A DNA stretch of 64,000 bases from Eutreptiella sp. 'Long Island Sound 2002' (GCA_964036045.1 OZ038378.1:31062001-31126000); one strand, 5' to 3'; positions 10,078-50,600 are shown, counted from the first letter of the stretch. Program-made: numbers and translations. The notes: generated by a model from the sequence alone, not told the origin.

Positions 10078-10084
10078 AACCGCC

Positions 10085-11050
10085 GGAGTGCTGCGACGGA
10101 CCAAGACATTTGCATGCCTCAACCGCTTTTGATACCCTTGCACGAACTAGTGTATCACGATGACCACCGCCGGGTCTGCCCCTGCCCATCCAAAGGCTAG
10201 TGGCTGAAAAACCTATGAAGAGGGGAGGGTATGCCAACCAGTGACAGCATGCAAAACAAAGGATGCTACCTGATCGGCCACTCTCATGTCGTTGTACGTG
10301 GGGTCAAACACCCGCCTGCCAGCGTTGCTGTCCACTGGCAACTGTTGCATACATCTCATAGGGGAAGTTGGCAGGGAGGCGAGCCCTGGCCAACGCCCAG
10401 AAGCCTGCCGGTTGGCACTGAAAAGCCCGGTATCAGGCACACATTCCTCATGCCGGCCGGCCGCTGGTCCGCACGTCCCAGCGCGGGGAGGACCGCGCAC
10501 CTAGGGAAGCCACTCATCGTGCGCCTCCGCGCATCGCGGACAGTCCCCCAAAATGTGGCCCTGTATTTCCGGCACTCGCCCAGTAAGGGCAGTAAGGGCA
10601 GTCCACTTTGTGATAGACATGCGGAAAAAGGTTGCGGCCGGCTACCCGATTATAGCCGAGCCCCTGGTGCACCGGCATGCGAGAACCCTCCATGTACACC
10701 GTGTGAGGATGGAAAGTGAGCTGGAAACCTTCATATGTGGCTATTACCAGTGACCCTTCAGGGCCTGATTAAAATGGGCTGGTCAAAGAACCTGCACGCT
10801 GAAGATTGTCTGCAAAAACTGGCAGGTCATCTTCGGAATCGATGCACCCCTAGTCTGTTGAAGGCCCCCCCTTGGCCCCCAACATAGAGGGACATGGACC
10901 AGCGCAAAAAACGCATGCACCTCCGGCACAACGTAGAAAACCATTGCCGACGCCGGGCAGCCTTGGGCCATGCTAGCTAGCAAACACGCCAAAGCTTCAC
11001 ACACACCCTCTGAATCATAACCACCCATATGCAATGTGGTGTTAGTGGTA
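10085..11050 (-). mobile_element. Degraded LINE reverse transcriptase fragment
   Basis: MAQGCPASAMVF (QGxPxSPxLF-like RT motif, ~10950) and a later HFGGL motif; heavily interrupted. Confidence 0.5.
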
Positions 11051-26000: not shown

Positions 26001-29000
26001 TGACGTAGCGATCCCGCCCTCTTTTGGCCCCCGAGGGGGCATGGGTGATGCAGCCAATTCTTATTTTCTCCCCTCGCTTGGCGTTGGGGATGCCCGAGAA
26101 TGCACGGGTGACGTAGCCATTCCACCCACTTGTGGGCCCCCCGAGAAGGTAGAGGTCAAGCAGCCAATTCTGATGAGGATAGAGTCACGGTCGGGGCTAT
26201 GTTTCTTGCACTAGTGACCTTCATATGGGGCTCGCACCGGACGTGTTCCGTGGGCACGTTTGGTTTTTCATGGTGCACCGTTCACGGTGCACGGGCTTTT
26301 GGTACCACTAATGAGGCCCTTGCGACAGGACATGCCATCCCCTTGACAGGCCAATTTTTGCTTTTTGTCGCAATGACCAGTGATCCGACCTTGTTGCGGT
26401 GGACCGGACGGTTTGGTCCAGAATGTGAGTTTCGGAATGGGCATGTGGTTTTTTTGGATGCCCAAATGGATGCCAATGGTCGTTGGGTCATTCCAGTGGG
26501 CACCCTGTCTGCCTTGTCTTTGTCAAAACCACACAGGTGCCGGAATGTCCTCAGTTGCGTGCAGAGCCTCACGCCGGTATGGCACATACTAGCGTGCGGC
26601 CCACGGAAGCAACAGAATTTTGTTTGTTTTGTGGAGCGGCCATTGCTTTGGCAAGGATGCGCAATCGTGTGGCAGTGCACTTGCAGAAGGGAGAGGTGGT
26701 AAGTGACCCAAGGATGTGTGGTGAGGCCGAACCTTGCGGTTTCTGCCGTTGCCGTACAGGCACGTGCACCGCAAGCATCTTCCGAAGATGGTAATAGCTC
26801 CTCTTCTTCCTCATTTTCTTCCTCCTCTACCTCTTCTTCCAAGGTGGAAGTTCTCCCAAAAATGAAAGTTGTGCCCGGCAAGGGCACAAAGCAGCCCATC
26901 ACCACTCCCAAGCAAAGGTGCTAAGAAGCAATGCGCGGTGAAGACGTCAAGGCGCAAGAAGTAGGCGGAGGCACACGCACCCTAGACACATACGTTAAAA
27001 CCAATATTTCTTTGGCTATGGCTCTCGGGGCCGTCGCGCGTTCCCCGTGTCCCCCGTGGGGAAGTGTTGGCTCTGGGGGTTTTTGGGGTTGCCGAATCCA
27101 TTTCCGCGGTTGTTTTTGTGCGGTTTTGGGGTTTTTAGGGTCAGAGCCACTGTTGGAACTTGGCTCTCGCGTTCTGCGTGTCCCCGGTGTCCCCCTTTCC
27201 CCCCCATGGTGCCTTGCACGGGTCGCGCCCGTCGCGCACGTTTTTGTTTTTTGGCTCTCGGGTTGTCTTTGGGCACGGTTGCTCGTCGGGTGCGTTCTGC
27301 GTGTTTTGCAGGGTATTCTTTTAGGGACAGGGTCCGGCAACACGGAGGGGGGTTGGCTCCCCCGAGACCTGAGGGCTATTGGTAAGCCCTGCAGGGTCCG
27401 GTAGCCACCGGCAGGTATGTTCCCTGTTTAAAAGCGACACCGAAGTGCCAGTGACGTTGTGTAGGCCGCAGTCCTGTAGCACACAAGTAGTCCACAAGGC
27501 AATCCCTTGGTACGTGTTTGAACCCCAAGGGTGTTCCCGGCTAGAATGTTCCCAATGGGAACAATTCCCGCCGGAACAATTTCTTTGGGAACACCATTGG
27601 AACAAGTGTCGCAGGCCAGATAACCAAATCCATCACCATGAGTTTCCAAGTTCGTAAATGATGTTTTTCGTCTCTTTCTTGCGTGTGTAACGCGTCCAAG
27701 GCTTGTCTTTCCCATCGGGGCCATGTTGACATATTGTGGGCCGTTGGTGCCACCTTCCCCTAGGTGTACACATTTGGAACTTTTCGTATCCATTTGCAAG
27801 CCTGCTGTTCCTTGTAGTCCAGACGCACCGTTGTATGACTTTTCAACGTTGGCGTACCCGTTTTCCCGTTTGATTTGTGCATTGTGGCCATGCCTAGGGT
27901 CCCATTTTGGTATTTGTTCCTTGCCTGAATGCTCGCTGGGTCTACGGGCATCTTCCCCTAGAGGTATGTATTGCCAAATTTCGCTTCGTAGTTCATTGTT
28001 GTAGCTTCGGCATGCCTGCGACACAGACCCGGGTTCAGCAACTAACCGCCTACCTCATCCATTTGGCTAGTGCTGTTAGCCTCCAGGACGGGGATCTTGT
28101 TGGGGAGCTCATAGCGGAATGGGCCGTCTCCTCTTCAGTCACCCACTGCCAATTTGCGGTGGCCGTGCGCTTGGCCCAACCGAGCTGTGTCCGAGAGATA
28201 CAGCAAGGCTTTCCAGCAGCGCTGGCAAGATCTGCTAGCCCCCTTGGAGCTTGCCCCCCCGGTGAGCACATTGGATCCCACGGCCACAGGCATCAGTTGG
28301 CCATGGGCATCGTGGCTGCGCCACATTGCGAGCCAACTGCCGTTGTGCTGCATGATCGATTGGTCGTTACCCCTGACATGCATTGTCAGGGGGGATGGCT
28401 ACCCATGCGCAGATGGGGAGTGGTCCCAATTGTCCGTGTCCATCGCTTGCATGGGCTTTTGGGGACGCATTCCCGCCTGCGTGTGGGTCATCGGCCTCGC
28501 AATAGGCGGGGACAAAGCGATGGCGACCTTGGCAACCTCTCGGAAGCCAATATTAAGGTGTGCCGCATACACACCGTGTTGTTCCGGTGACGTTCCGATA
28601 ACTTGTTCCGGCGACGTTCCGGCGACGTTGAAGTGTTTTGTTGGAACCGTCACCGGAACAATTTGGTTCCAACAAAATTGATGTTTTGTTCTTAGGCCAT
28701 CCAGGAGGTTGTGGACACCCACCGGGTGGTCTACAACTCCCGCAAGCGAGCGGCCGGTGCCTGGCTATGTTTGGGTGCGGGTTTGGGCATGGGTTTGGTT
28801 TTGGGCTTGGGTTTGGGTTCGGGTGTGGGTTTGGGTTTGGGTTTGGGTTGCGGGTTTTGGCTTGGGCTTGCGTTTGGGTTTGGGTTTGGGTTGCGGGTTT
28901 GGGCTTGGGTTTAGGTTTGGGTTTGGGTTGCGGGTTTGGGCTGGGGTGTGGATTTGGGTTTGGGTTTGGGTTTGGGTTTGGGTTTGGGTTTGGGCTTGGG

Positions 29001-32000
29001 TGTGTGCATTGTGTTGGTGTGTTTTGTGTGTTACCCTGCCCCCCCCCCCCCCATGTCCCCTTCAGGGTTTGGGTTTGGCCTTGGGTTTGGGCTTGGGTGT
29101 GGGTTTGGGTTTGGGCTTGGGCTTGGGTTTGGGTTTGGGTTTGGGTTGCGGGTTTGGGCTTGGGCTTGGGTTTGGGTTTGGGTTTGGGTTGCGAGGTTGG
29201 GCTTGGGTGTGGGTTTGGGTTTGGGTTTGGGTTTGGGTTCAGGCTTGGGTTTGGGCATGGGTGTGTGCATTGTGTTGGTGTGTTTTGTGTGTTACCCTGC
29301 CCCCCCCCCCCCGTGTCCCTTTCGCTCCTTGCCCCCCTTTTGTCCCTTTCCCTGTTTGCACCCCTTTGTCTGTCTTTGAATGACAATTTTGATTTTAATT
29401 TTGATAAAAATGTTGAAAAAAAAAAAGAAGAAAGGTTTGTGCCTTCCCTTCAAAACCCCAGGCAGTCGACCTGGGGCCCAGCCACTGCGTGGCGGGTAGT
29501 TGGGTTTCACTCTCCCTTCCAAACCCCAGGCAGATGACCTGGGGCCCAGCCACCGCAGTGGCGGGTAATTGATCTACTTACCACGGTTCCCTAGCCCCCC
29601 CCCCCCCCCGGGGCTGCAGTGCGCCTTGTGCGCGCCCAGTACTGTGTGTATTTTCCACTGTTTTGGCGACGTTCCAACAACGTGTTCTGGCGACGTTCTG
29701 GCGACGTTCCAACGGTCACTGGAACGTCGCCACAACGTCGCCAGAATAAGTTACCGGAACGTCGCCGGAACAAGGTGTGCAGTGTGCGGTACCACACACA
29801 CACACACACACACACACTTCGGCGAGCCAATCTCCGCACGCAGTCATACATGGGTCTCCCTCGTTGATAGCACAGGGCGGCCGCGGCTTCCGCGGCAAGT
29901 ACTCCGATGGGGGACCAAACCGCGGCCCTCACCGCGGCCCTCACCGAGGCCATCGTCGCGGCGTTGCAGCCACTGCTACGGCGCACCCCGTGGGGGGACC
30001 CCCTCATAGCGGAGGACTCCGACCAGGGGGGTTGGATACGCGATGGAGCCCAGTACTATGGGGAGGAGTACTTCTGGCTGCCCCCGGGGCAGACTCCGCG
30101 ACAGTGGCGAGAAGAACATCGTCAAATGCGCGAGCAGCAGCAGCTTCACGCGAAGGAGGTCCAGCCCCAGCCCGAGCCCGACGAGGGTGCCGCGGCAGCA
30201 ACGGCGGCGGCGGCAGTGCTGGCGGCAGCAACGTTGGCAGCCAAGGCGGAGCTGGCTATTCAGCAAGCGGTCGAGGACGAGGAGGCTATTGTGCACATCG
30301 CGCGTGCCGGGGCCCAGCCAGGGCGAGCGGCCGCCACGGCGGAGTGGCCGGAGCTGCCGGCAACATGCGTGCCCCCGCCCACGACGCCCTCCCGGGGCGA
30401 GCCGGGCCGGAGGGCACAGGGGCGAGCCCGCGCCAGGGCGCGTCGAGCGGTCGCGTCGTTGGCAGCGGCGTCCACGGCGGCAGCAACCGCGGCAGCAGTG
30501 GCAGCGGCAGCGGACCACGAGGAGTCGACGGCGGCAGCGCACAGCGGTCTGGGCCTCATCGAGCAGGGGGCCATGGTATGCCTGCAGCGCACTGACCCCC
30601 TAGGCCTGTGGGGCCCAGTGGGGGCATGGGCGGATGAGCCCTGCCCCCTGTATGGCAAGTTGGAGGTGCAGGCGGCGTCCCCTAGCGCCCAGGACGCCAC
30701 CTGCGACTTTTTGGGCAGCCCGCAGGCTGCCAATGGCGCTGTCTTTGGCGCTACCGGTGCGCCTGGGGCTGGTGGGGACGCATCCCCCAGCGCCCAGGAT
30801 GCCATCTGTGCCTTTTCGGGCAGCCTGCAGGCAGCCAATGGCGCTGTCTGTGGCGCTACCGGGGCGCCTGGGGCAGGTGGGGACGCATCCCCCAGCGCCC
30901 AGGACGCCACCTGTGACTTTTCGGGCAGCCTGCAGGCTGCCAATGGCGCTGTCTGTGGCGCTACCAGGGCGCCAGGGGCTGGTGGGGACGCATCCCCCAG
31001 CGCCCAGGACGCCATCTGTGCCTTTTCGGGCAGCCCGCAGGCTGCCAGTGGCGCTGTCTGTGGCGCTACCGGAGCGCCTGGGGCTGGAGGGGATGCATCC
31101 CCTAGCGCCCAGGACGCCATCTGTGCCCTTTGGGGCAGCCTGCAGGCTGCCAATGGCGCTGTCTGTGGCGCTACCGGGGCGCCTGGGGCTGGTGGGGACG
31201 CATCCCCCAGCGCCCAGGACGCCATCTGTGCCTTTTCGGGCAGCCTGCAAGCTGCCAATGGCGCTGTCTGTGGCGCTACCGGGGCGCCTGGGGCTGGTGG
31301 GGACGCATCCCCCAGCGCCCAGGACGCCATCTGTGACTTTTCGGGCAGCCTGCAGGCTGCCAATGGCGCTGTCTGTGGCGCAACCAAGGCGCCTGGGGCT
31401 GGAGGGGAAGCATCCCCCAGCGCCCAGGACGCCATCTGTTGCCTTCTCGGGCAGCCTGCAGGCTGCCAATGGCGCTGTCTGCTGCGCTACCGGGGCGCCT
31501 GGGACTGGTGGGGACGCATCCCCCAGCGCCCAAGGCGCCATCTGTGCTGACCCCCCGGCCCTTACCCACTTATCTGGGTTCCGTGGGGGGAGGGGGGTGG
31601 AGGTGGTCAGGACCAGCCCCCCCCCCTGCCTTGCGTTGACCCAATGCCCTGGGGCATCAGGGGGCTGCATTGTTTTTGAGGAAGTCTTTCAGGGAGGGGG
31701 GAGGCAGCAGGAGATGCTGGAGGATGAGGTGTGCACCCGCGCGTGCATAGAGGAGCTCCAGGTGGCGACGCTGGAGCTCCTGATGGGTAGTTTTCGGGAG
31801 GGGGGGCTGCGCCTTTCTGCCCCCCCCTCCCCCATCAATTTATGCCCTAACCCGCCCCCGGGCCGCCTGCCCTGTGCGGCGCCCTGGGGGTCAGATTCTG
31901 TTTCATCTGGCGGGGGATGGGGCCTCACCCCCCCCCTCCACTGCCCTCGCCCCAGCCTCCTGCCCCCCAGACCACGGGGCCAGGGGAGGGGGGGCGTGGC

Positions 32001-32712
32001 GGCTCTGCCACCATCTTTGAGAGGGCCATTGGCCCAGCCCACCAGCGGTGGGAACGGAGGGGCCCTGCCGGTAGCCAGGGCCGCCGGCCTCCCCGTGAGT
32101 GGTGGGGCCCGGCTGGCTTTCGTTTCTGCTAGCCCAGTGATGTCACGGGCTAGGGAACCCCCCCCGTGCGATCCGAGCCCGCGCTCAGGGCACAAGGTGC
32201 GTACTTGGGGGGAGGGGGATCACAATCACCCCCTCCCACAGGTGCATCCAGCAGCTCCAGCGCTGGAGCTGGGGCAGTCGGTTTCCGCAACCGCCAGCCC
32301 GGAGGAGGTACATGTGGGGACGTCGGCTTCAACCGCCGCCGGCCCTGCGACAGAGGCGTGGGGGGTGGGGATTCCGGATCGTCCCCTCCCCCCTTCGTGG
32401 CCGCAGGCAGCGGCACGGGCGGTTCTGGGGCACAGCCCAGGAGGGGGGCACGCCCCCCCAGCAGGAGGCAAGGAGGCGCCGGCTCCGGCGCATCAGGGGG
32501 GCAGCAGGGTGCCGGTGATGGTGCACGGGAGAGCCTCAAGTGAGGTGACCTAAGTCAAGGGCGGACGTCCTTCCGCCGCGCCGCGACATACCGGGGGGCT
32601 GGGGGTGGGATAGGGCAGGCTTCACGCAGGCTCTAACCCGCTAACCCCTAACCCTCCCGTCGCAAGAGCGGCCAGGACATTAATAGCCATCAACCCTCGT
32701 TGATAGCACAGA

Positions 32713-32744
<32 letters not shown>

Positions 32745-35700
32745 CACACACCACACACCACAGACCAACCACAGACCAACCACAGACCACCAACCGCGGA
32801 CCACCAACCACAGACCACAGACCACAGACCACAATCCAACCACAGACCACAGACCACAGACCACCAACCACACACCACAGACCACATACCACAGACCAAC
32901 CACAGACCACCAACCACAGACCACCAACCACAGACCACCAACCAAAGACCACCAGCCACAGACCACAGACCAAAGACCACAAACCAGAGACTAAAGACCA
33001 CAAACCAGAGACTAAAGACCACAGACCACAGACCACGGACCACCAACCACACACCACAGACCACACACCACAGACCAACCACAGACCACCAACCGCAGAC
33101 CACCAACCACAGACCGCAAACCACATACCACAGACCAACCACAAACCACCAACCACAGACCACCAACCACAGACCACCAACCAAAGACCACAGACCAAAG
33201 ACCACCAGCCACAGACCACAGACCAAAGACCACAAACCAGAGACTAAAGACCACAAACCAGAGACTAAAGACCACAGACCACAGACCACGGACCACCAAC
33301 CACACACCACAGACCACACACCACAGACCAACCACAGACCACCAACCGCAGACCACCAACCACAGACCGCAAACCACATACCACAGACCAACCACAAACC
33401 ACCAACCACAAACCACCAACCACAGACCACCAACCACAGACCACCAACCAAAGACCACCAGCCACAGACCACAGACCAAAGACCACAAACCAGAGACTAA
33501 AGACCACAAACCAGAGACTGAAGACCACAGCCCAACAGACCACGGACCACCAACCACACACCACAGACCACACACCACAGACCAGCCACAGACCGCAGAC
33601 CACATACCACAGACCAACCACAGACCACCAACCACAGACCACCAACCACAGACCACCAACCACAGACCATAAACCACAGACTAAAGACCACAGACCACAG
33701 ACCACAAACCACCAACCACACACCACAGACCAACCACAGACCACCAACCGCAGACCACCAACCACAGACCGCAGACCACATACCACAAACCAACCACAGA
33801 CCACCAACCACAGACCACCAACCACAGACCATCAACCAAAGACCACCAGCCACAGACCACAGACCAAAGACCACAAACCAGAGACTAAAGACCACAAACC
33901 AGAGACTGAAGACCAAAGACCACAGACCACGGACCACCAACCACACACCACAGACCACACACCACAGACCAGCCACAGACCGCAGACCACATACCACAGA
34001 CCAACCACAGACCACCAACCACAGACCACCAACCACAGACCACCAACCACAGACCATAAACCACAGACTAAAGACCACAGACCACAGACCACAAACCACC
34101 AACCACACACCACAGACCAACCACAGACCACCAACCGCAGACCACCAACCACAGACCGCAGACCACATACCACAAACCAACCACAGACCACCAACCACAG
34201 ACCACCAACCACAGACCATCAACCACAGACCACAGACCAAAGACCACAAACCAAAGACCACAAACCAGAGACTAAAGACCACAGACCTCAGACCATAGAT
34301 CACCAACCACACACCACAGACAACAGACCGCAGACCACAGACCACACACCACACACCACAGACCACTCACCACAGGCCACCGACCACACACCACAGACCA
34401 CTCAGCACAGGCCACGGACCACAGACCACAGACCACAGACCACCAACCACGTACGATAGACCGCAGACCATAGACCACAGACCACAGACCAATTTCCTCC
34501 ATGTCATACGGGCCACTCGGGCCAGAAAAACTTTCCCCAAGAAGGTGTTCCGGCGACGTTCCAGTAAATGGTTCTGGCGGTATTCAAATCTTGAACACCT
34601 AAAAACACCGGAACGTCGCCGGAACGTCGCCGGAACAACTTGCTGGAACGCCGCCAGAACAATTTTCATTGCCCCCTCCTTTGCAACCACAGACCACAGA
34701 CCACATACCACAAACCACAGAGCACCAACCACAGCCCACAAACCACAGACCAAAGACCACACACCACACACCACACACCACAGACCACAGACCACTGAGC
34801 ACCAACCACAGCCCAAAGACCATAGACCGCACACCACACACCACACACCACAGACCACATACCACAGACCACAGAGCACCAACCACAGCCCAGAGACCAC
34901 AGACCACAGACCACAGACCATAGACCATGGACCACAGACCGCACACCACACATCACACATCACAGACCCACAGACCACAGACCATCAACCACAGACCACA
35001 CACCACAGACCACAGACCACCAACCACAGACCACAGACCACACACCATGGACCACACACCAGATCATCTACTGTGGGGTTCTCGGGTTCGCCCCAACCCT
35101 TCAATCCTACGTGACAATATAAACTCCTACCCCTTTTATTGGCGCGGGGCATGCACACATGCTATGACATTGCATGCGTACAAAAATATTTTTCATGATA
35201 CCTGCAAAGTGAAGCAAGCACGGGGGGAAGCAGGAGAGAAGGGGCACAAACTCAACAGACTCAACTGACCCACAACCCCCACAAGGGCCTACCCTTCCCC
35301 GGGGGGGGGGGGGGTTGGAGACTGACAACACCCGAGACTCCGCTAGACCACCCCCCCTAGGGTAGGACGGAACCTAAGCCAAGGCCTGGGCTAGGCCCTA
35401 GGTCGGGAGCCTGGGTTTTGGAAGGGAGAGTGAAAGAAAACCAAAAACCATTGCCAATCACCCGCCGCCCGAAAAGGGGTTCACAAAGAGACTACCACGA
35501 TGCGCCCTCACGGGCACCTTGCACAACAATGTATGTTACCATTTTACCCTTCCTCGTGCTTTGCTCTTAATGTAGGTTGCTTGTTCCGGCGACGTTCAAA
35601 TAACTTGTTCCAGCGGTGTTCCAATGGTGTTCTAACAAAAACTGTTTTTGAAAACAAGTTTTTTTCACGTTGCAACGCGGCGGACAACAAATATAAGCAT

Positions 35701-38700
35701 ACCAGCGGGGACCCCCAAGGCTAGCAAACAACAGATTTTGGTATCATGTAGGCTTGGTTGGGGGGTAAACAAATTTCGAACTTTTTTTGTTCCGGCCATA
35801 TAGCCTAGAACACTAGAACAATTTGGCTGGAACAACCTTGGGGTTCAAACTCGCACCAAGGGATACCAGGGCCACGAAGGCCACACGTTCTCCCATAGGC
35901 CACAAGTTGCACCCACGGCCACGCAGGCCACACCACCAGTCGCCTAAACAGTGCATCGTTGTCATCGCCTTCCGTAGCCCTTTTTTAGACGCAAAAGGTG
36001 ACTGGTCGTTGGATTTTGAAAAAGCACAGAAATACGAGCATCGGTGTGTCCTGTGTGTCTCGCGTGTCCTGCGTGCTGCCTTTGCACGTGTCCGTGCAAT
36101 CCGTTATTCGTCCCGCATGTCCTGCATGTTCTCCATTGCACTGGTCCTTGTGTCCAGGCATGGCGCTGCCGCTCTACCCGTCATCATACCAAGTCGCTGC
36201 GTCACACTTGGAGCAATGCGACCCAATGTCGGCGGCCGACGGCGAGCTTGGCACCGCCGCGGTGATATTTCAAATTAAGCAGCAGACCAGTGGGTATCAC
36301 GTGGGCTGGGTGCAAGGGGTCAAGGACATCAAAGACCCCAAGACAAAGGAAGTCGAGGACGGCCTCTACCTGTCGCAGGGGATTAGCTAACAAATACACA
36401 CCCGCGAGAACAAAAAGACCGGTGCCACGTAAGGGCGTATCGAGAACCAAAGGAGCCAAGGAAATTTGGCCGTGGCAATCAACAAGATCAAGAGCGGCTG
36501 TTTCCGGGGATTCATCCCAGATGAGGTGTGGGTGCGTCGTGCGCGTCGTTTGCGTTGGCTCTGTCTCTGTCCCTGGGCCCTGTCTGAATGTCGTGCCTGC
36601 TTTGCGCGTCCAGAGTCCCAGGCTCCTCTACTATCCCTAGGGACAGGGAAGCGTCGGGCGCGTCGTGCGCGTTCTCCACCTCCTGTACCCGTGTCCACAG
36701 CTGGAGAAGTCGAAGAAAGGGAAAGAGAAGTCAAAGAAGCAAAAGGAGAAGCAGAAGGAGAAGGAGCAGACAAAGAAGAAGAAGAAGGAGGGAAAGGAAA
36801 AGAAGACGAGGGGCCAAACTCCAAAGAAGAAGGAGGAGGAAGCGGCGGAGGAAGGGGACGAAGATGAAGAAGAGGAGGATGAGGAGGATGACGAGATTAT
36901 ACTTCTCGGCAAAAAGCAGGCCAGGGTGGCGTCGGCGAAGGCACAGGTGGCCAGGATGAAAGCGGCGGGGACCCGGATGGGGAGGCAGGTGAGGTCAACG
37001 TTGTTGGAGAGGATTGACCCCATGTCCCCGGACAGTGGCAAGGGAAGGTCCAGATCAGGGTCGGGCGGCGAGTCCAGCAGCAGCGGCAGCAGCAGCACCA
37101 GCACCAGCGTCGGCAGCAGCAGCAACAACGGTGACACCGAGCAGGACGAGCCAAGCAAGTTGGCAAAGACCAAAACTGCACTTCGCAATGTCGAATCAGA
37201 GGAAGTGGTCGCGCGGGCGAAAAAGCCACACTTTTACGTGGAGACCTCAGGGCGGCCCCCACGTGTGTTGCCTACCAGGGCAACCCGCCAAGAGAAGCAT
37301 AAGAGCAGCGATGCCCACCAGCGAAGTCTCCAATTCCTCGAGGAGTTCCCGCAGGAGTACGACGGCAACGCAGCTAGCAAGGGCGTTTACTCCGTGGGAC
37401 GCACTGGGCAGCAGACCACACTCACAACCGGTACAACAGTACTGGCAGCGATGATCTCATTGACAAGGAATGGGAGTGGGAGGACGTGCAGAACGCGGCC
37501 GACACGCGCATCGTCCCCGGGGACAAGTTCAGAGACAGCGTGCAGAACGCGCCCAGCGTCAGTGCGGACCAGAGACCAGCCGAGGGACAGTGTGGAGGGG
37601 GAGGAAACAGAAGGGGGACAGTTGACAGTGGGCAGTGGGCAGTGGGCAGCGCACACCAGCGGTGTGCTGGTACCCTCTGCAGTGTGCATTGTGGGGCGGG
37701 TGGCTGCCGCGCTGTGAGACCCTGCCTGGTTGGGGGCCTAGGCCGCACAACAACCGATCTCCTCCATCAACAACCCCCTATTGTGCGCATCCCCCCAGCG
37801 AGGAAGGCCGGCCCTCGCGGGAGGGCTGGGGCTGAATGGTGCGGTGGTTACCTAGGAAGCGGTGCATTCTGTGGCGGGGAAGGCCGGCGTTGGGGCAGCG
37901 GGCCCAAGAGGGGGACAGCGGGTGGCAGCGGCAGCGGGGGAGGAGGAATGGAAGGCGAGAAGGAAAGGTAAAGGGAGGTAAGGAGGTAAGGGAACCCAGC
38001 GCTCCGTGAGTCAGTCTTGGACGTGTGGACTTGTGATTGGTCTCGCGGGGCCTTTATAGCTGGGGCAGCTTCCCCTTGGGGAGTGGCGGAGCAATGTACA
38101 TACACATTTATATATTTGCGGCACTTCTTTGTCACAGTTAGTGTGCTGAGACGCGCACGACGCGCCCGACCCCCGCGACGCACTGTGCGGCCCCAGGGAC
38201 AGCATGGGGGACATCATGTAGGACGCGCGGAACGTTGTTGTGGCACCACGGACTGGTCTAGGGACAATGTGCACGACATGCAGAACGCATGCATCCCTTG
38301 TTAACAGCTCACACATGCCCTCATTAGGCCGTCTTTCGGAGGGGCCGCTCCCACGTTCCCAGTGCAAAAGTGATCCGTCGCAGCCCATACGACCCGGGGT
38401 CTGCAAGACTGGATGGATGCAACATTGATGAGGTTTGGGACTACATGCTGAAGCCAATAACCGGGCTGCAGTGTGCCATCCTCGTTGCAGAACACCAACA
38501 GCAACTCGTTCCATGGGTGGACAAGTACGTCGTGCGTGTCATGTGCTACGGCTCCGAACGTCGTGCGCGCTCTGCACGGTGGCCTCGTTTGTTGTTCCTC
38601 ACCTTGGCACCGTGTTCCTGCGCGTGCGTCTTAACCATTTGTAGGTACAATTCGTTCCTGATTTGCCTCGGTATGGTCCGGCCGGTACAAGTGGACGGCA

Positions 38701-41641
38701 TTTGGGATAAAAAGCATGTAGCGTACAACAAGTACATGGCTTCCCTCTTACCCCGGTCTATGTACTACCAGTTACAAAAACTTCTACGAACCGATGTTAC
38801 CGACCTCCTTGAGATGTGCAACTCCGTGTGGAGTGCAGCGTGGGATATCGGTGGGGCGGTGTGTGGGGATGAGGCCATTATTCCCCACACCGGTGGCTGG
38901 TGCATGGGGCTACGGCAATACATCGCCCGCAAGCCCCATGCCACCGGTAGAAAGTTATACGTCCTTGCCGACAACACGGGGGGGGGGGGGGTACGTTGTG
39001 GACGTCTACCTCTACACCGGCCGTCAGGGGAGAGTCCAGGGGTGTGGGTCGTGTGCGGGGAACTTCGATGCCAAGCGCATCGTGGGGCTCTGGTCACGAC
39101 TCATCCCACTTGGGACCATGTTCGTGGCCGATAGCTTCTTCGGAAGCCATGCCATGGCACAAGACCTCTCGGCTCGTGGGACCCTTTACTTGATGCTCAT
39201 CAGGAAGGACAAGCGGGATGCCGGCCTAACAAAGGCCAAGCAGTCGACCCAAGAGGGCGATTGTGCACGGGCCATTGTGGACGGCACCTACGAGCTGTGC
39301 GTCTACAAGAATATGAAGGTTGGGCACAAGCCCCCAAAAATTGTCCCCTTCCTTACCAATTGTTGGTACGGGGTCGACGATCCCGCGCGGGATCAGAGGG
39401 GCAACAACCTCCCCGCCGTGGTGGCCAAGTACCGCCAGGTCTCCCGTGCCGTGGACGGGGCAAACCAAATGGCGCCGCAAATGCGCCAAATGGGGCGCCA
39501 AATGACATGGAGCCACGCCGTGCGTGCGTGCGTGCCTTCATGTTGTTAGCCACCGCCAATGTCACATCCTCCTCCAAGTAGAGGAGGTGATTCGATTGGC
39601 AGCCGGCCTGGCAACAATGCAGGCGGTATGCCCGCGCGACCTCCGCGGCCCGTAGGTCGGCGCGCGGTGGGGTATCCGAGTACAAGTCCCGGAGAAGGTT
39701 CCGCATGGCAACCTCCGCTTGCCACTCATCGTCCTCCGGGGCGTAGGCTCATAGGGGCGCGAATTCCTCCCGTGTGAGGAACAACGCCCGTGCCTCCTCT
39801 CCGCCTGGCGAAGCCGAGACCCCAAACCGGACGCCGGTGCGAGCCCGGTAGAGCACGCGTTGCACGGCCACAGCATTGTTCTATGGAAGGTCCCCTAGGC
39901 AGGCCACAGCGAAAGCCACTTGGAGGCGGCTCGTGGCCATGCAACAACGGAGGCCTGCATGGGAAGACCAAGCAGCGCTCCACCACAACGTGCGGCTCAC
40001 CTACGCACCCCCCATTCTCCAAATTGAGGCCCCTCTCCCAATGGAGGTGACGGGCCACCGCCTCCTTCTCCAATGTGCGGCAGACGTCCGACTTCACCCA
40101 CGCTCCCGCAACCTTGTCCCACACACCCATATTGTAAATAGAACCCACCATGGGCGATATGAAGACGCCAATGAGGTGCCTCACGAAGGGTTAGCCACCC
40201 CCGATGACCAACTCAGCGGGCACTTACTTGGTGCCCCAATAGAACTTCTTGCAGTCGTGGACGGACTGCAACACCTACGGACAAACGGGGGTTAATTTTT
40301 CAATTAATTTTTCGAGGTTAATATTGGATTAATTTTTCAGTTTGCGTTAATTGTTGCGAAATATCAAGTATTAACCTCGGAAAATGAACGCCAAAACGAA
40401 AGCGGAGCAAAACGACCGTATACCTGCAGGTTCTTGGACCATATTGTCACGAGCGCGGCCATGTCCTTGTCCCCGCATACGGCCAAACCAATGACCCATA
40501 CGTAGGCGGGTGTTCGGCCCCGTGCGCCGTGGTTGAGGAGCCCAATGGAAAGCTGGGTCCAACTTCCACCGGCGCACGGGTAGGCATCCCCACCGAGGAG
40601 GAAAGTGAGCGGCCGTTTCCAATCGATGGTGTCAACAAGGGGTGGGCGCGATTGGATGTAGCGGGCCCATGATTGCAACGGCCAAGGGCGGCCGCTTCTG
40701 GGGGGGTCCACCACAGACACGGGTCGATCTAGCGCAAGCGGCTTGACCAACTCCTTCCATGTGTCCATGAAGTGGTCACGTGAAGGGATGGGGCGGGGGA
40801 TTGGGAGGCCCGTCGCGGCAGTGTATGCAGCCCCCCGGCGGGTCGTGAACTCAAACACATGCCGGAAGCCGCCCTTGGGGACATTCAAGTCCATAAGTAA
40901 CCCGATCAATTCGGGTGCGGGGAAGAGGACGGAGTCATATTGCTTCACGGCCTCTATTTGCTTGTTGCGGATGAGCGGGAGTTGGGCAACCTTGGTGGCC
41001 TCGTACCACCGGGTGTTGGACAAAGGGGATGAGGCCATCCACTCACCAAGGAGTTGGGAGACCAAAGGGTCCCGCAAACTCTTGGCCCCACCCAAACGCG
41101 TGAGCGTCATACTAAGCTCGAGAAGGGTGTCCCGAGAGAAAGGCGTAACAAGAGCTACACAAGGGAAAAAGGAGGTTGGGAGTGGGGTGAGTGGGGGGAC
41201 CGGAGAGGGATGTGTGGGACTACATAACTACCTATAGGACTATGCAACCCCTGTAGCAACCCGTTGGGCGCCCTTTGACCACCCAAATACTTCAAATGGG
41301 CATGGTACGCGCACAAGCAAAGCAGGGCAAATGTACCAAAATTGGGTTACCGTGTTAATATTTGACAGGTTACTTTTCATATATTTCATACATTAAAAAT
41401 TAAAAATCACCATATTCCTTTGGCTACAGAGCCGCCATTCACGACCAGAGCCATGGAAAATGTCCAGCGTGTCCCTGGCAAACAAACCTAAACGTTCTAG
41501 GACACGTAGGACGCACATGACGCGCACGACGTTGGGGGCCAAATGCGGCGTGGCTCCGGGGACATGTTGAGAGCCACCAATCTAGGACACGCAGGACGCG
41601 CAGGACGCGCCCGACATTGATGTGCAGATGCACCATGGTGT

Positions 41642-41679
<38 letters not shown>

Positions 41680-44600
41680 GGGGTGGGTGGATGCATGGGG
41701 CCGCGTCCTCACAGTTGGGTATCCAGCCTACGCGGTTGTCCCACCAGGGTTCGCACTGGTCCCATGGGTAGGGATAGCAGAGGCTGCGCCCCCACGTCCG
41801 TCTCGTCATAGCCCACGACCTACTCCACATCATGGGCGGGCCCAAAGCACGTGATGTGCATGGCCGTGCCACATGCCGCGCACGCCCAATGCGTTCGGCC
41901 CTCACCACAATAGGTGCAGAGCTTCCGCTGCGTGTGCCGGACCGGTGCGTGTACCACGCTTTCCGGGCGGGCCGCGGGAGCCTCAGGCCGCGCAAAGTAC
42001 CGCCGCTTGAGGATGTCCCACTGAAACTCCCACATGGTGGTCTTCTCGTCCACCAACCCCAACGCCTTGCATGTTGCAAAGGCAAGCCCGGCCGCGTACC
42101 GCAGGCGGCGCGCCTTGGGGTCGGGTTGGGCGCGGTGTGCGCCGATGTTGTTGAGAGCTTCAACGCCAACCTCAAGTGGGCCTACAACGACCACACGGCC
42201 CGCGGGGGGGGGGATGCCAGGGGCTACGGCATTGGAACGGGAGGCGGAGGTGGTGTTGCAAGCGTTGGAGTGGTGGTTTTTGAAATTTGACCTACCGTTA
42301 CAACACCATGGGGCACCGCATACGGCCCCATGCACTATGGCCAAACTCATGGCCACCCAAAGTCCCCCACCGTCTTCCTTCTCGTCCCCACCCCTAGCTC
42401 TTGTTTCATCGATCCATGTACCAAGACATGCTGAAGGCCCTCTTGGGCGAGATGATGAAAGCCCAAGAAGACCGGCTGGTATGGTTGTTTTGCTTGTTGT
42501 TTGCATTTTGCATCGGTTAATTTTTGGGTAGTCTCAATTAATATTTGTAGGTTAATGTTAACGCCGGCAACTTATAATATTTAATATATTAGTTAGTATT
42601 AAGTGGTTAAATATTACCCTCGCAAATATTATTCGTGAATGCGAAAAATTAATTTCTTTTGTATTTTCGCCTTAGATGCGTCATCCGACCGGTATAGTCA
42701 GGGGGGGGGGGGTTCTGAGAAATCCGATGGCGTGGGGGGTTTTGAAAAGAAAACCCTTATTTAAAAAATCGTCTCTGCGGGGGTTTTAAGGGTGTTTATC
42801 GACGCAGACACACCTTTTGTGCGAAATTTTTTTCGGTGGTATTCTTTTGGACTACACATCCAAAGTTTTGCCCTTACCCCCAATCAAGCCACTTTTGATT
42901 TTTTCCCCCTAGCTAGGGACCCCCCATAATGCAAGGGTGATGTAGCATTTCCGCCCGAGAAGGGAGGGACAGCGTGGTCCTTAGTAATGTCTATCCTCCC
43001 TTTTGGGGGATCCCGAGAAAGCAAGGGTTGCGTAGCAATTCCGCCCTCTTTTGGGCGCCCAAAAATTTTGCCCCCTTTGCTCGCCGGCCCACGTGTGGGC
43101 CACTTCTCATTCTGCCCCCCGCTCTGAAGCGCTGGGGACCCCCCCGGCGGCGGGGGTTATGTAGCCACCTTGCCCACTTGTGGGCTTCCGATTCTGCCCC
43201 CCGCTCTGAAGCGGTGGGGACCCCCGGGGCGGCATGGGTTATGTAGCCACCTTGCCCACTTGTGGGCCACTTCTGATTCTGCCCCCCGCTTTGAAGCTGC
43301 GGGGACCCCCCGGGCGGCCGGGGTTATGTAGCCACCTTGCCCACTTTTGGGCCACTTCTGATGCTGCCCCCCGCTCTGAAGCGTTGGAGACCACCAGGCG
43401 GCGGCGGTTATGTAGCCACCTTGCTAATTTGTGGGCCACTTCTGATTTTGCTTGCCGCTTTGAAGCTGCGGGGACCCCAACGGCGGCAGGGGTTATGTAG
43501 TCACCTTGCCCACTTGTGGGCCACCTCTGATTCTACCCCCCGCTCCGAAGCGGTGGGGATCCCCCCCCAAAGCGGCAGGGGTTATGTAGCCACCTTGCCC
43601 ACTTCAGGGCCACTTCTGATTTTGCCCGCCGCTTTGAAGCGGCGGGGACCCCCGAGGTGGCAAGGGATATGTAGCCACCTTGCCCACTTGTGGGCCACTT
43701 CGGATTCCCCCCCCCCCGCTCTGAAGCGGTGGGGAACCCCGGGCCGGCAAGGGATATGTAGCCACCTTGCCCACTTGTGGGCCACTTCGGATTCTGCCCC
43801 CCGCTTTGAAGCACCAGCGACCCCCCAGGCGGCAGGGGTTATGTAGCCACCTTGCCCGCTTGTGGGCCATTTCCGATTGTGCCCCCCGCTTTACAGCGGT
43901 GGGGACCCCCGAAGCGGCAGGGGTTATGTAGCCACCTTGCCCACTTGTGGTCCACTTCCGATTATGTCCCCCGCTCTCAAGCGGTGGTGACCCCATCAGG
44001 CGGCCGCGGTTATGTAGCCACCGTCCTCATTTGTGGGCCACTTCTGATTTTGCTTGCCGCTTTGAAGCGGCAGGGTCCCCACCAGGCGGCAGGGGTTATG
44101 TAGCCACCTTGCCCACTTGTGGACCACCTCTGATTGTACCCCCCGCTCCGAAGCGGTGGGGACCCCCGTAGGCGGCAGGGGTAATGTTGCCACCTTGCCC
44201 ACTTCAGGGCCACTTCTGATTTTGCCCGCCGCTTTGAAGCGGCGGGGATCCCCGAAGCGGCCAAGGTTATGTAGCCACCTTGCCCACTTGTTGGCCACTT
44301 CGGATTCTGCCCCCCGCTGTAAAGCGGTGGGGACCCCCGGGGCGGCAACGGATATGTAGCCACCTTGCCCACTTCTGGGACACTTCGGATTCTGTCCCCC
44401 GCTTTAAAGCGGTGGGGACTCCCGGGGCGGCAGGGGTTATGTAGCCACCTTGCCCACTTGTGGGCCACTTCTGATGCTGCCCCCTGCTCTGAAGCGGCGA
44501 GGACCCCCGAGGCGGCAGGGGTTATGTAGCCACCTTGTGCACTTGTGGACCACTTCTAATTTTGCCCCCCGCTTTGAGGCACTAGGGACGCTCCAAGCGG

Positions 44601-47600
44601 TAGGGGTTATATAGCCACCTTGCCCACTTGTGCGCCACCTCTGATTATGCCCCCTGCTTTGAAGCGGTAGGGATCCCTGAGGCGGCAGGGGTTATGTAAT
44701 TACCCCGCCCACTTGTGGTCCACTTCCGATTCTTCCCCCTACTGTGAAGCGGTGGGGACCCCCGAGGCGGCAGGGGTTGTGTAGCCACCTTGCACACTTG
44801 TGGGCCACCTTTGATTTTGCCCTCCGCTCTGAAGTGGTGGGGTCCCCCGGGACGGCAGGGGTTATGTAGCCACCTTGCCCACTTGTGGGCCACTTCTGAT
44901 GCTGCCCCCTGCTCTGAAGCGGCGAGGACCCCCGAGGCGGCAGGGGTTATGTAGCCACCTTGTGCACTTGTGGACCACTTCTAATTTTGCCCCCCGCTTT
45001 GAAGCACTAGGGACGCTCCAAGCGGTAGGGGTTATATAGCCACCTTGCCCACTTGTGCGCCACCTCTGATTATGCCCCCTGCTTTGAAGCGGTAGGGATC
45101 CCTGAGGCGGCAGGGGTTATGTAGCTACCCCGCCCACTTGTGGTCCACTTCCGATTCTTCCCCCTACTGTGAAGCGGTGGGGACCCCCGAGGCGGCAGGG
45201 GTTATGTAGCCACCTTGCACACTTGTGGGCCACCTTTGATTTTGCCCTCCGCTCTGAAGTGGTGGGGTCCCCCGGGACGGCAGGGGTTATGTAGCCACCT
45301 TGCCCACTTGTGGGCCACTTCTAATTCTGCCCCCCGCTTTGAAGCGGTGGGGACCCGTCAGGCGGCAGGGGTTATGTAGCCACCTGGTGCACTTGTGGGC
45401 CACCTCTGATTTTGCTTGCCGCTTTGAAGCGGCGGGGACCCCCGAGGCGGCAGGGGTTATGTAGCCACCTTGCCCACTTGTGGGCCACTTCTAATTCTGC
45501 CCCCCGCTTTGAAGCGGTGGGGACCCGTCAGGCGGCAGGGGATATGTACCCACCTTGCTGATATGTGGGCCACCTCTGATTTTGCTTGCCGCTTTGAAGC
45601 GGCGGGGACCCCCCAGGCGGCAGGGGTTATGTAGCCACCTTGCCCACTTATGGGCCACTTTTGATTCTGCCCCCCGCTCCAAAGCGGGGGGAGCCCCGAG
45701 GCGGCAGGGCTTATGTAGCCACCTTGCCCACTTGTGGGCCTCTTCTAATTGTGCCCCCGTTGTGAAGCGGTGGTGACCCCCGAGGCGGCAGGGGCTATGC
45801 ACATGTGGTAGCCACCTTGCCCACTTGTGGGCCACCTCTGATTCTGCTCCCAGCTCTAAAGCGGTGGGGACCCCCCCGGCGGCATGGGTTATGTAGCCGA
45901 CTTGCCCACTTGTAGGCCACTTTTGATTATGCCCCCGTCTCTGAAGCGGTGGGGACCCCATGCGGCAAGGCTTATGTAGGCAATTTGCTCATTTGTGGGC
46001 GACCTCAGATTTTGCCTGCCGCTTTCAAGCGACGGCGACCCCCAAGTCGGCAGGTGTTATGTAGCCACCTTGCCCACTTGTGGGCCACTTCTAATTCTGC
46101 CCCCCACTCTGCAGCGTTGGGGACCCTCGAGGCGGTGGCGGTTATGTAGCCACCATGCTCTTTTGTGGGCCACTTCCAATTGTCCTTCCCGCTCCGAAGT
46201 GGTGGGGACCCGTCAGGCGGCAAGGGTTATGTAGCCACTGTGCCCACTTGTGGGCCATTTCCGATTCTGCCTCCCGCTCTGCAGCGGTGGGGAGCCCCGA
46301 GGCGGCAGAGGTTATGTAGCCACCTTGCCCACTTGTGGGCCACCTTTGATTCTCCCCCTCGCTCTGAAGCGGTGGGGACCCCTGGGGCGGCAAGGGTTAT
46401 GTAGCCACCTTGCCCATTTGTGCGCCACTTCGGATTCTGCCCCCAGCTTTGAAGCACTAGGGGTTATGTAGCCACTGTGCCCACTTGTGGGGCATTTCCG
46501 CTTCTGCCCCCCGCTCTGTAGCGGTGGGGACCCCCAGGTGCCAGGGGTTATGTAGCCACCTTGCCCACTTGTGGGCTTCCGAATCTGCCCCCCGCTCTGT
46601 AGCGGTGGGGACCCCCAGGCGACACGGGTTATGTAGCCACCTTGCCCACTTGTGGGCCACTTCTGATTGTGCGCCCCGCTTTGAAGCTGCGATGACCCCC
46701 GAGGCGGTAGGGGTCTTGTAACCACCTTGCCCACTTGTGGGCCATTTTTGATTCTGCCCCTCGCTCTAATGCGGTGGGAGCCCCCGGGGCGGCAGGGGTT
46801 ATGTAGCCACCTTGCCCACTTGTGGGGCACTTCTGATTCTCCCCCGCGCTGCAAAGCGGTGGGGACCCCCGAGGCGGCAAGGTTCATGTAGCCACCTTGC
46901 CCATTTGTGGGCCACTTCGGCTTCTGCCCCCCGCTTTGAAGCACTAGGGACCCCCCAAGCGGTAGGGGTTATGTAGCCACCGTGCCCATGGGGCCATTTC
47001 GGATTCTGCCCCCGGCTGTGTAGCGGTGGGGACCCTTGGGGCGGCAGGGGTTATGTAGCCACCTTTACACTTGTGGGCCAAATCTCATTCTGCCCCCCCA
47101 TTAGAAGCGGTGGGGATCCCCCAGGCAGCAGGGGTTATGTAGCCACCTTGCCCATTTGTGGGCCACTTCTGATTTTGCCCCCCCGCTGTAAAGCGCCGGC
47201 GACCCCCGAGGCGGCATTGTACCCACCTTGCTCATTTGTGGACCACCTCAGCTTTCGCCCGCCGCTTTGAAGCTGCGGGGACCCCCGAGGCGGCAGGGGT
47301 TATGTCGTCACCTTGCCCACTTGTGGGCCACTTCTGATTCTGCCCCCCGCTTTGAAGCTGCGGGGACCCCCGAGGCGGTAGGGGTTATGTAGCCACCTTG
47401 CCCACTTGTGGGCCACTTCTGATTATGCCCCCTGCTCTCAAGCGGTGGTGACCCCACCAGGCGGCGGGGGTTATGTAGCCACCTTGCCCACTTGTGGGCC
47501 ACCTTTGATTCTGCCCCCCGCTCTAAAGCGGTGGGGACCCGTCAGGCGGCAGGGGTTATGTAGCCACCTTGCCCACTTGTGGGCCACTTGTGATTCTGCC

Positions 47601-50600
47601 CCCCGCTTTGAAGCGGTGGGGACCCCCCGGGCGGGAGGGGTTATGTAGCCACCTTGCTCATTTGTGGGCCATTTTTGATTCTGCCCCCTGCTTTGAAGCG
47701 GTGGGGACCCCCGAGGCGGCAGGGGTTGTGTAGCCACCTTGCCCACTTGTGACCCACCCCTGAGTTTGCCCGCCACTTTGAAGCGGTGGGGACCCCGGAG
47801 GCGGCCAGGGTTATGTAGCCACCTTGCCCACTTGTGGGCCACTTTTGATTCTGCCCACTTGGGGGCCCACTTCCGACTTTGCCCGCCGCTTTGAAGCGAT
47901 CGGGACCCCCCATGCGGCATTTTTTTTTTGGCACATCCTGATTGGCGCAAGCGGCATGAGTGCTATGCCACTAATCGATTGACTCCACTTGAGTACAGGT
48001 CAACTTGTAGTGTGCAAGGTGTCCATGTCAAAAAGGTCGGGAAAGGGGTACATTGCCTACAAGAGCCATCCTTGAGCAACACCCACAGATTGGCTCATTT
48101 GCGCGCAATGTCTTGGAATATCTTTTCCAAGGCGGTGCAACCCTTTTGAAACTATGTGGTGCACCCCTCCTGTTCGACAAAGAAGACAATCCTTCGGGGA
48201 CCGCCCCGGACACCAAATGAATGGAGGATAGCGATCCTACCGATGCTTTTTCCCTGGAATCCTGGCTACGTTGTCATGGTTGTGACCGAAATCAAGTCTA
48301 TGTCCCATGCGCCAATGGACACACTGTGCATATTCCACAACTTGTCAATGAGTATTTCAACGGCAATGTTGAACATACGTCAACCGATCGGGTGCGGTGC
48401 ACAGCACAAACCGCCTGGTTTGGTCAGACCCCCACGAATTTAAACAATATTGCATTGCCTGACAATTGCAATTTTGATGAGGATGGAGTCACGGTTGGTG
48501 CTATCTTTCTTGCACTTGTGACCTTCATATAAGGTTCGCAACGGACGTGTTCCGCGGGCACGTTTAGTTTTTCATGGTGCACCGTTGACGGTGCAAGGGT
48601 TTATGGTACCACGAAGGAGGCGCTTGCCACAGGACATGCCATCCCCGTGATAGGTCAATTTTTGCCTTTTGTCGCAATGAGCAGTGATCCAACTTTGTTG
48701 CGGTGGAAGGGACGGTTTGGTCCGGAATGTGAGTTTCGGAATGGGCATGTGGTTTTTTTGGATGCCCAAATGGATGCCGATGGTCGTTGGGTCATTCCAG
48801 TGGGCACCCTGTCTACCTTTGTGAAAACCGCACAGGTGCCAAATTGTCCTCAGTTGCGTGCAGAGCCATACACTGGTGTGGCACATACTAGCGTGCGGCC
48901 CGCGGAAGCAACAAAATTTTGTTTGTTTTGTAGAGCGGCCATTGCTTTGGCAAGGATGCGCAATCATGTGGCAGTGTACTTGCAGAAGGGAGAGGTGGTA
49001 AGTGACCCAAGGATGTGTCGTGAGGCCGAACCTTGTGGTTTCTCGTGGACGCACAACGGGCACGTGTACCACAAGTATTGTGGGGTGTGCGTGTGACTAG
49101 ACTGGTCGGCCGACGCAACTCGGGAGGCCCTTAAGGCTATGGCGGGCCAGGCCTCCCTCCCCGCGCCATTGTGTGGGCCTTCCATTACTAGTGTGCATGC
49201 TCCTACAAGGGAAGGAGAGGGAGAGCGAGGAGGTGTAGGGGGCGGGGGAAGTTTCCGTTTGTGACGTGTGTGTGCATATAGCTCCGCCTACTTCTTCTGC
49301 CCTGACGTCTTCACCATGCAATGCTTCTTAGCACTTTGCTTGGTAGTGGTGATGCGCCGCTTTGTGCCCTTGGTAGGCACAGCTCTCTTTTGGGGGAGAA
49401 CTTCCACCCCGGAAGAAGGGGTAGAAAAGGAAGAAGATGAGGAAGACGAGGAGCTATTACCATCTTCGGAAGTTGCGGAACTCTCGTTACCGCTGGATGA
49501 ATCGTGATCTGCGGAAGACCCAGATTCCACAGAGCTTGCATCCTCCTCCGGTTTCCACTCCCAATCGGAGCGGCCAAGAGAGGCTTCAGAGAAGGACGCA
49601 CTCTCGTTGTGGACCGCCTTTGCCACTTTCAAAGTGATCTTGGGCTTCATCACCATGGGGATTTTTTTGGCTCGCCCCCTTTTTTTCTCATCGTCCTAGC
49701 TGACTACAACCCATTCCGTCAAATCAACGGTGTTTGGTGCCACGGTTGGATGGCACCGTGCCAAGTGAGTGTTGATGTTGAAAACCCACGGGGTGGCACT
49801 GCACCCGGGAATAGGACATTCACGGGGCATTTTTTCTTGTTTGCGCATGGCCACTGCGAGCTTCAATGGGACCACACACGGGCATGTGCTGCTGAATTTG
49901 TTGCGCTTCTCTTATGCCCTCCCCTTGACGCATTTCTCACCCCATGTATTTCTAACCCCATGATGCATTCTGCACCCCATGACCGACCTTGATGCATTTC
50001 AACCCCCATGCTACAATTCCAACCCCACGGTGTATTTCGAACCCCATGACTGCCTCGGAGACCCACAGTCCCGAGGTTACTAGTACCCATCGCCGGAAAC
50101 ACCCAAGCCGATGAAACCCTACCATAGACGTTGGTAGGGGCGGTGCGAATTGTCGGATCACACCTGGGCGGCATACCCAACTGTTCGGAGGTGCCCGACG
50201 CTATTTTTTCTTGCGGGGGGGGTTTTGGGCGGCCGGGGTGCTCTTCGCGCGGACAATACCCCCGCGCAGCGAAAAACCACCTTTAAACCCCCCCCCCCCA
50301 AACCCCCCCCTTTTTTTTAAATTTGGCTCTGTGGTGGGGTTTAAGCATGATATCCGATTTCCGAGAACCCCGCCCCCCCCTGAGTATAGTGACACGCGAG
50401 GACGCTAGCGCCACAGAGGATGACAACGCCACCGAGGATGCGGCACTAGGGGTGGAAATTACCGTCTCCGCGGAGGGATATGCGGATGACACCTACATGC
50501 TGATGGTTGCGCTGCTGTCCCTCCTGTCCATGCTGGTGGCCACTAGCAAATGGCTGAAGCTCACGAGCCAAGAAATAAACGCCAAAAAGTCGCTAGCTTT

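Follow-up and report, generated by a model that had tools for sequence, protein, structure and literature searches.

Parts of two transposase genes that seem to come from different superfamilies lie interleaved on opposite strands within one stretch of the genome of Eutreptiella sp. 'Long Island Sound 2002' (GCA_964036045.1, OZ038378.1:31062001-31126000), and the question raised by this locus is whether they are the remains of a single mobile element that carried both transposases or of separate elements brought together by insertion and rearrangement. The stretch analysed here, which we call the window, is 64,000 nucleotides long and consists of GC-rich eukaryotic DNA packed with repeats. One of the two genes is of the piggyBac type and the other is referred to here as gene X. 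A preliminary description of the window had proposed that an inversion hides a tandem pair of transposase genes, one of them piggyBac and the other Transib/RAG1-like, and that the pair may have formed a composite element. The inversion is borne out by our comparisons with related copies, and the composite element is not: the locus very probably consists of three dead cut-and-paste transposons, nested one within another and rearranged afterwards. The three are a "type-A" element encoding gene X, a piggyBac-like element lying within its tip, and a "type-B" element that lies in turn within the piggyBac-like one.

For the analysis of the inversion, positions 39546-42104 were flipped in silico and the product was compared with relatives from public assemblies (given below by L and P numbers). 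As it stands in the window, the coding sequence of both genes is divided as follows.

39546-42104, no strand assigned: inverted segment, 2.56 kb, with breakpoints accurate to ~2 bp; flipping it restores colinearity with L001, L009 and L010
38394-39545, plus strand: N-terminal two thirds of the piggyBac transposase, with a GT-AG intron at 38525-38644
41823-42104, minus strand: C-terminal part of the transposase with a Cys-rich domain, contiguous with the N-terminal part in P0236, P0221, L004, L009 and L010
39546-41110, minus strand: gene X (type A), a pseudogene made up of exon 1 (41110-40424), an intron (40423-40284) and a degraded exon 2 (40283-39546)
40588-40586, minus strand: first catalytic D of gene X, in exon 1
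42105-42290, plus strand: gene X C-terminal portion, which includes the catalytic E motif (codon for E at 42153-42155), of the same length and order as in L001 (...AVAN ARCLGARLGAVCAGVVESLN) and L002/L004
8348-10087, minus strand: partial duplicate of 39035-40772, 1,740 bp, 98.2% identical, with the left inversion junction at 9576/9577

The piggyBac frame runs along the plus strand up to ...TTC ATG TTG at 39545 and is picked up on the minus strand from 42104 (CTG CGG TAC...), and gene X runs along the minus strand from 41110 to 39546 and is picked up on the plus strand at 42105, from where it continues to the ...ADVVESFN motif. Both breaks fall inside transposase reading frames, one in each gene, and the coordinates of the junctions, frames and introns in the preliminary description are correct. 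Once flipped, the window matches L001:8025-10169 in one colinear stretch of 2,182 bp (74% identity) that spans the right breakpoint, and it matches both L009 and L010 in colinear stretches of 2.1-2.9 kb (91-92% identity) that span the left breakpoint; these are uninverted copies of the kind for which a search had been proposed. The protein of gene X is likewise uninterrupted at the break position in the more distant copies L002 and L004, as is the piggyBac protein across the left breakpoint in P0236, P0221 and the L004 copy. What the flip restores is colinearity and not, as had been claimed, two open reading frames (ORFs), since frameshifts and stops remain.

At the level of single bases, the two junctions are reciprocal, with each part present once and 1-3 nt gained or lost, as is the case for a simple two-break inversion. 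Uninverted copies (L009/L010) read TTCATGTTGCGGTAC at the piggyBac break, and in the window the two sides read ...TTCATGTTG and CTGCGGTAC..., with a gain of 3 nt; the break carries a 2-3-nt duplication, and the protein, which is FMLRYAAG in the uninverted relatives, is restored as FMLLRYAAG. At the gene X break, uninverted copies read GTGGCTAAT followed by GCGGCG (in a Logan contig of another copy, with L001 similar), and the L001 protein is ...LEEDVTEAVAN ARCLGARLGAVCAGVVESLN, equal in length to the restored window reading. Gene X is 1 nt short at the break unless base 39545 is counted as shared by the two junctions, in agreement with the preliminary description.

Mis-joining of repeat copies during assembly, at a locus that is in truth uninverted, has to be weighed against this evidence. 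Both genes belong to multi-copy families, and the public sequencing runs, which consist of short Logan contigs of a multi-copy family, mainly show the uninverted form from other copies (the joint of 39527 to 42103 is present at a depth of 280-1005) and show no reads or contigs that bridge either inverted junction. Two further points fall on the same side, i.e., the window contains the right junction a single time, and searching public assemblies for the exact junction-spanning ORF returned no record and hence no independent assembly of the junction. Such an artefact is nonetheless difficult to reconcile with the left junction, which is present a second time at 8348-10087 in a copy that has diverged to 98.2% identity and, as already argued from its junction at 9577, speaks against mis-assembly. 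It is also at odds with the reciprocity of the two junctions and their gains and losses of so few nucleotides, and with the uninverted joints in the public runs, which differ from the window at ~4% of positions and so come from other copies. We regard an artefact as very unlikely, and a real 2.56-kb inversion that splits two transposase genes is what the alignments indicate.

Neither breakpoint lies at an element end, and no ATAT, TTAA or end-like motif was found at the breaks, nor was any inverted repeat found at the two breakpoints. Recombination between inverted repeats was considered as the cause of the inversion and rejected, the breaks being without any repeat. The presence of three transposons at the locus brings to mind an inversion made by a transposase, either through aberrant or intramolecular transposition or through cuts at cryptic end-like sites, and the duplication at the piggyBac break is close in size to the 2-bp target duplication of the RAG1-fold elements described below. 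An origin of this kind is extremely unlikely in view of the distance of the breakpoints from element ends, the absence of such motifs at the cut, and the gene X break, which lost one base and gained none. With neither flanking repeats nor transposon ends at the breaks, the junctions resemble the products of end-joining repair and point to that process rather than to recombination or transposase action.

In the flipped order, the piggyBac gene is followed on the same strand by a spacer of ~710 bp and then by gene X, and each gene has one GT-AG intron, which supports the ancestral arrangement that had been proposed. The outer parts of the elements are distributed around this core as listed here.

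26980-27003, plus strand: 5' terminal 24 bp of the type-A transposon, severed by the piggyBac-like insertion
27004-27007, no strand assigned: left ATAT target-site duplication, with its partner at 41412-41415; L001 and L007 have one ATAT at the site
27008-27503, plus strand: the initial ~500 bp of the piggyBac-like element with its left inverted end; identity is 92.5% with L010:5347-5856 and 91% with L009
35863-39545, plus strand: middle of the piggyBac-like element, with an upstream ORF and the N-terminal two thirds of the transposase, 91-93% identical to L009/L010
41412-41822, minus strand: 3' end region of the piggyBac-like element, with ATAT at 41412-41415 and the inverted end at 41416-41433
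Within the piggyBac-like 3' region: subterminal GCGTCCTGCG-type repeats at ~41487-41620, (CA)n at 41636-41680 and a conserved 118 bp at 41697-41814
41111-41411, minus strand: type-A 5' leader, including an AT-rich block and abutting the piggyBac end; aligns with L001:7822-8130 and L007
42291-42690, plus strand: type-A downstream part, with an AT-rich block at 42513-42680; L001 homology extends to 42594, and another repeat element begins near 42699

The right inverted end of the piggyBac-like element, together with its ATAT (41412-41433), is located inside the spacer between the two genes, and the preliminary description had itself named an end in that position as a mark of simple nesting. L009 and L010, which are 91-93% identical to the flipped window, match it from 35879 to flipped position 40239 (window position 41411); the homology of both stops at exactly the same base, and the three flanks beyond it are unrelated. 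Window positions 27004-27506 correspond to the first ~510 bp of L009 and L010 and include the matching left inverted end, and the end motif is common to the window, L009, L010, L011 and L004. The piggyBac-like element in the window thus spans 27004 to 41415 in present coordinates (~4.9 kb without its nested passenger), with a left end far from the start near 38370 that had been assigned to piggyBac.

The site into which the element inserted can be recognized in relatives that lack it. When the flanks of the window are joined with a single ATAT, they are colinear with both L001 and L007 in a three-way alignment across the insertion point, and the 28 nt at 26980-27007 match the type-A 5' tips of L001 and L007 at 19/28 positions each, a level that was reached by 1/2000 shuffles. 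These alignments show that L001 and L007 serve as empty sites, with the piggyBac-like insertion at an ATAT 25-28 bp inside the type-A 5' tip and duplication of that ATAT. Searches with tblastn detected gene X within 10 kb at 0/3 of the other piggyBac loci (L009, L010 and L011) and piggyBac at 1/5 of the gene X loci with long flanks, i.e., at L004, where the two genes are divergent, and not at L001, L006, L007 or L008. Linkage at several loci within shared termini, which had been suggested as a check, is therefore not seen, and a search for long inverted repeats bracketing both genes around the flipped piggyBac-plus-gene X unit found none.

A composite transposon, a single mobile element that includes both piggyBac and gene X and moves with the two transposases together, would account for their tandem order on one strand before the inversion and could draw on the adjoining piggyBac-like gene and gene X homologue of L004. 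It is scarcely credible for an element whose piggyBac-like half has its own inverted end and ATAT duplication inside the spacer, when the two genes occur apart at most of the other loci, the L004 pair is divergent rather than tandem, and empty sites exist. The separate ends, the separate occurrence and the empty sites argue together for simple nesting. In L004, where the piggyBac belongs to a different lineage and is oriented opposite to the type-B element, the type-B 5' end lies ~1.1 kb upstream of its transposase-coding region. This piggyBac has its right end at L004:3643 and no left end between the two genes, an arrangement that suggests another nesting and not a shared unit. A documented true composite is Teratorn, a piggyBac-like element fused with a herpesvirus (PMC10175614); its partner lies inside the piggyBac ends and moves along with them, whereas gene X lies outside the piggyBac ends. 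The locus is closer to the familiar combination of nested DNA transposons and a two-break inversion, with which it shares elements that have their own ends and target duplications, paralogous empty sites, and junctions without flanking repeats at which 1-3 nt are gained or lost; nothing essential is different. It is because both breaks lie inside transposase reading frames that the locus looked like one split unit.

Several observations weigh against the nested reading. The severed type-A tip is short, at 28 nt; neither the 3' end of the type-A element, sought by end motif and by L001 homology, nor its target duplication was found. The comparison loci with long flanks all come from one assembly (ENA ERZ25074135). 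The recurrence of the two kinds of gene as neighbours in L004 may reflect some non-random association of the two families.

The identification of the first gene as piggyBac-like is supported by Pfam, in which DDE_Tnp_1_7 (PF13843) matches it in two frames (E 2.2e-6 and 7.9e-4) because a run of G14 at 38978-38991 shifts the frame; the close relatives P0224 and P0236 also bear PF13843. A C-terminal Cys-rich domain, recognized from its sequence pattern (C-x2-C ... C-x2-C ... H-x2-C at 41823-41900 on the minus strand), aligns with the equivalent region of P0208, P0217 and P0221. The terminal inverted repeats are short, within the 12-19 bp expected for piggyBac, and read T(T/C)CTTTG(G/T)CTA... after the ATAT on the left and the reverse complement of this on the right. 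In the piggyBac superfamily (PBLE; Bouallegue et al. 2017, PMC5381638) the DDE_Tnp_1_7 domain, the C-terminal Cys-rich domain, the short inverted ends and the 4-bp palindromic duplication are all shared with the present element, which differs in its length, in a conserved upstream ORF and in having ATAT instead of TTAA. A TTAA target-site duplication was not found, and ATAT is present at both ends in the window (27004-27007 and 41412-41415), L009 (4153/11888), L010 (5347/11756) and L011 (4902/11583) and singly in L001 (7818-7821). Non-TTAA sites have been described for piggyBac as rare single-copy exceptions that are probably mutational (PMC5381638). The presence of ATAT in 4/4 copies, along with a single ATAT at the two paralogous empty sites, points to what would be a true 4-bp ATAT target duplication in this family.

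The piggyBac-like gene in the window is damaged relative to L010, with 7 additional nt in the G14 run and an 8-bp GTGC slip near 39520-39535, and is a pseudogene; some of the additional G residues may stem from sequencing error in the homopolymer. The upstream ORF is E/K-rich, 350 codons long (36665-37717) and conserved at 84-91% protein identity in L009/L010 and faintly in L011, and it has no Pfam match. The 118 bp immediately after the piggyBac stop (41697-41814) are 90% identical to L004:3897-4013, at a distance where the transposases themselves are only ~55% identical, which suggests that this stretch may be a conserved cis-acting 3' sequence. In both lineages it is followed by subterminal repeats of the GCGT(C/T)CTGCG type.

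The identity of gene X is less easily established from sequence. Exon 1 corresponds to an ORF of 248 codons (41110-40367 on the minus strand) in which the exon ends at 40424 and a GT-AG intron follows. The copy in the window is a pseudogene, with at least 4 in-frame stops and at least 1 frameshift, and its second catalytic GGD is replaced by GGG; the possibility of a short second intron in exon 2 was weighed and dismissed, as homologues place two of the stops inside the conserved GGD...PW motif region. In a library of 1.84 billion proteins, exon 1 has 427 related clusters, all of them short ORF-sized pieces, among which there is no Pfam domain and no telling name. Motifs common to the homologues are GGD(G/A)YP, GGD(L/S)PW, C-x-L-H, SPDGE, D(I/V)VESxNRxLK and RGGG. 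The pieces of gene X matched no family in Pfam, the Protein Data Bank (PDB) gave no match to single-sequence or profile searches, a feature search of the ESM Atlas with exon 1 returned weak unrelated matches only (scores <=0.84), and a scan of metagenomes yielded one short contig.

Structural models were more informative. For a model of the C-terminal half, confident only in its helical core, the top 44 Foldseek matches in the PDB are all RAG1 or HzTransib (best E 2.4e-3), and for an independent model of the N-terminal half (pLDDT 81) the top 46 are RAG1, BbRAGL or HzTransib (best E 8e-4). These E-values are weak (8e-4 to 2e-3) and the TM-scores are 0.3-0.4, because each model covers half a protein. 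Both halves are predicted to fold like the core of RAG1/Transib (structures 6PQN, 6DBO and others), with the same motif order of D, D and E in an ESxN...K context, the second D and the E being separated by a large helical insertion, and a RAG1/Transib-like assignment of gene X is supported at the level of the fold. Membership in the Transib family is not supported. Transib is defined by a 5-bp target duplication and a CACAATG heptamer (Kapitonov and Jurka 2005, PMC1131882). The type-A 5' tip begins CCCTAG or CCCCGG rather than with this heptamer, and the type-B element has CCCTTGG ends and a 2-bp duplication, so that elements with gene X lack two defining features of Transib, in addition to their lack of a sequence match to Pfam or the PDB. 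The Mirage group of the EnSpm/Mirage/Chapaev (CMC) superfamily makes a 2-bp target duplication and has a DDE transposase considered a relative of Transib. Gene X elements may lie closer to this 2-bp Mirage type; the duplication of type B is likewise 2 bp, and the ends of type B and type A differ from those of CMC in that they do not start with CAC.

Some other features of gene X elements may be recorded here. AT-rich blocks with words of the TTAA/ATAT type interrupt the otherwise GC-rich element in the intron (40284-40423), the leader (41340-41410) and the 3' region (42513-42680). The intron contains a 26-nt hairpin (40304-40329 with 40363-40388, 85% paired), and the 3' AT-rich block of L001 ends like an intron, with a pyrimidine tract plus AG. 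In L003, a 6-kb contig, gene X seems to be intact, with ORFs of 257 aa and 405 aa, and is followed on the same strand by a low-complexity ORF of 687 codons (L003:3415-5478) that has no Pfam match.

The third element belongs to a second lineage of gene X and accounts for the distance between the two parts of the piggyBac-like element.

27504-35862, plus strand: type-B RAG1-fold transposon of 8,359 bp that lies within the piggyBac-like element and looks complete, with a gene X-like fragment at 27907-28766

It begins with sequence 88-91% identical to L004:6614-8056, and its terminal inverted repeats of 27 bp (27504-27530 and 35836-35862) start with CCCTTGG and have 2 mismatches. AT occurs on either side of it (27502-27503 and 35863-35864) where the uninterrupted L009 and L010 have a single AT, which indicates a 2-bp target duplication for this RAG1-fold element. 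Close examination covered its first 1.3 kb; the interior has a stretch of ~70% GC at 30-32 kb and strongly strand-skewed sequence at 32-36 kb.

The history of the locus may be pictured as a succession of events. A type-A element encoding a RAG1-fold transposase (gene X) would have been in place, with its 5' tip at 26980, when the ~4.9-kb piggyBac-like element, oriented like gene X, entered the ATAT 25-28 bp inside that tip, an insertion that by itself yields the order of piggyBac gene, ~700-bp spacer and gene X. The 8.4-kb type-B element would then have entered ~500 bp inside the piggyBac left end with duplication of AT, perhaps before the inversion. Two double-strand breaks, one in each transposase frame, may have followed, with the 2.56-kb middle piece rejoined in the inverted orientation, at the cost of 3 nt gained at the piggyBac break and 1 nt lost or shared at the gene X break. 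Finally, a 1.74-kb piece across the left junction would have been copied to 8348-10087.

Elsewhere in the window, long tandem arrays with units of ~85 bp that are ~80-87% alike occupy 43087-47856, just after the type-A element, and 25400-26200; related arrays are found in L001:99-1452.

In the ~230 kb examined, three independent nestings were seen, one of a piggyBac-like element in the type-A tip, one of type B in the piggyBac-like element of the window, and one in L004, where type B lies beside another piggyBac lineage. A reciprocal target preference, in which the ATAT-specific piggyBac-like elements insert into the AT-rich terminal and intron blocks of the RAG1-fold elements and the latter insert into the 5' regions of piggyBac-like elements, is a speculative and rather improbable explanation; if true, it would mean a reciprocal target preference between two transposon superfamilies rather than a composite element. 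A false lead is removed by these results, in that there is no element with transposases of two superfamilies here. Their value lies in base-level boundaries and paralogous empty sites for two unusual lineages of protist transposons, i.e., an ATAT-duplicating piggyBac-like family and a RAG1-fold family that duplicates 2 bp and has ends of the CCCTTGG type. Such boundaries are helpful for the annotation of a very repeat-rich genome, and they bear on the spread of the RAG1 fold beyond Transib proper.

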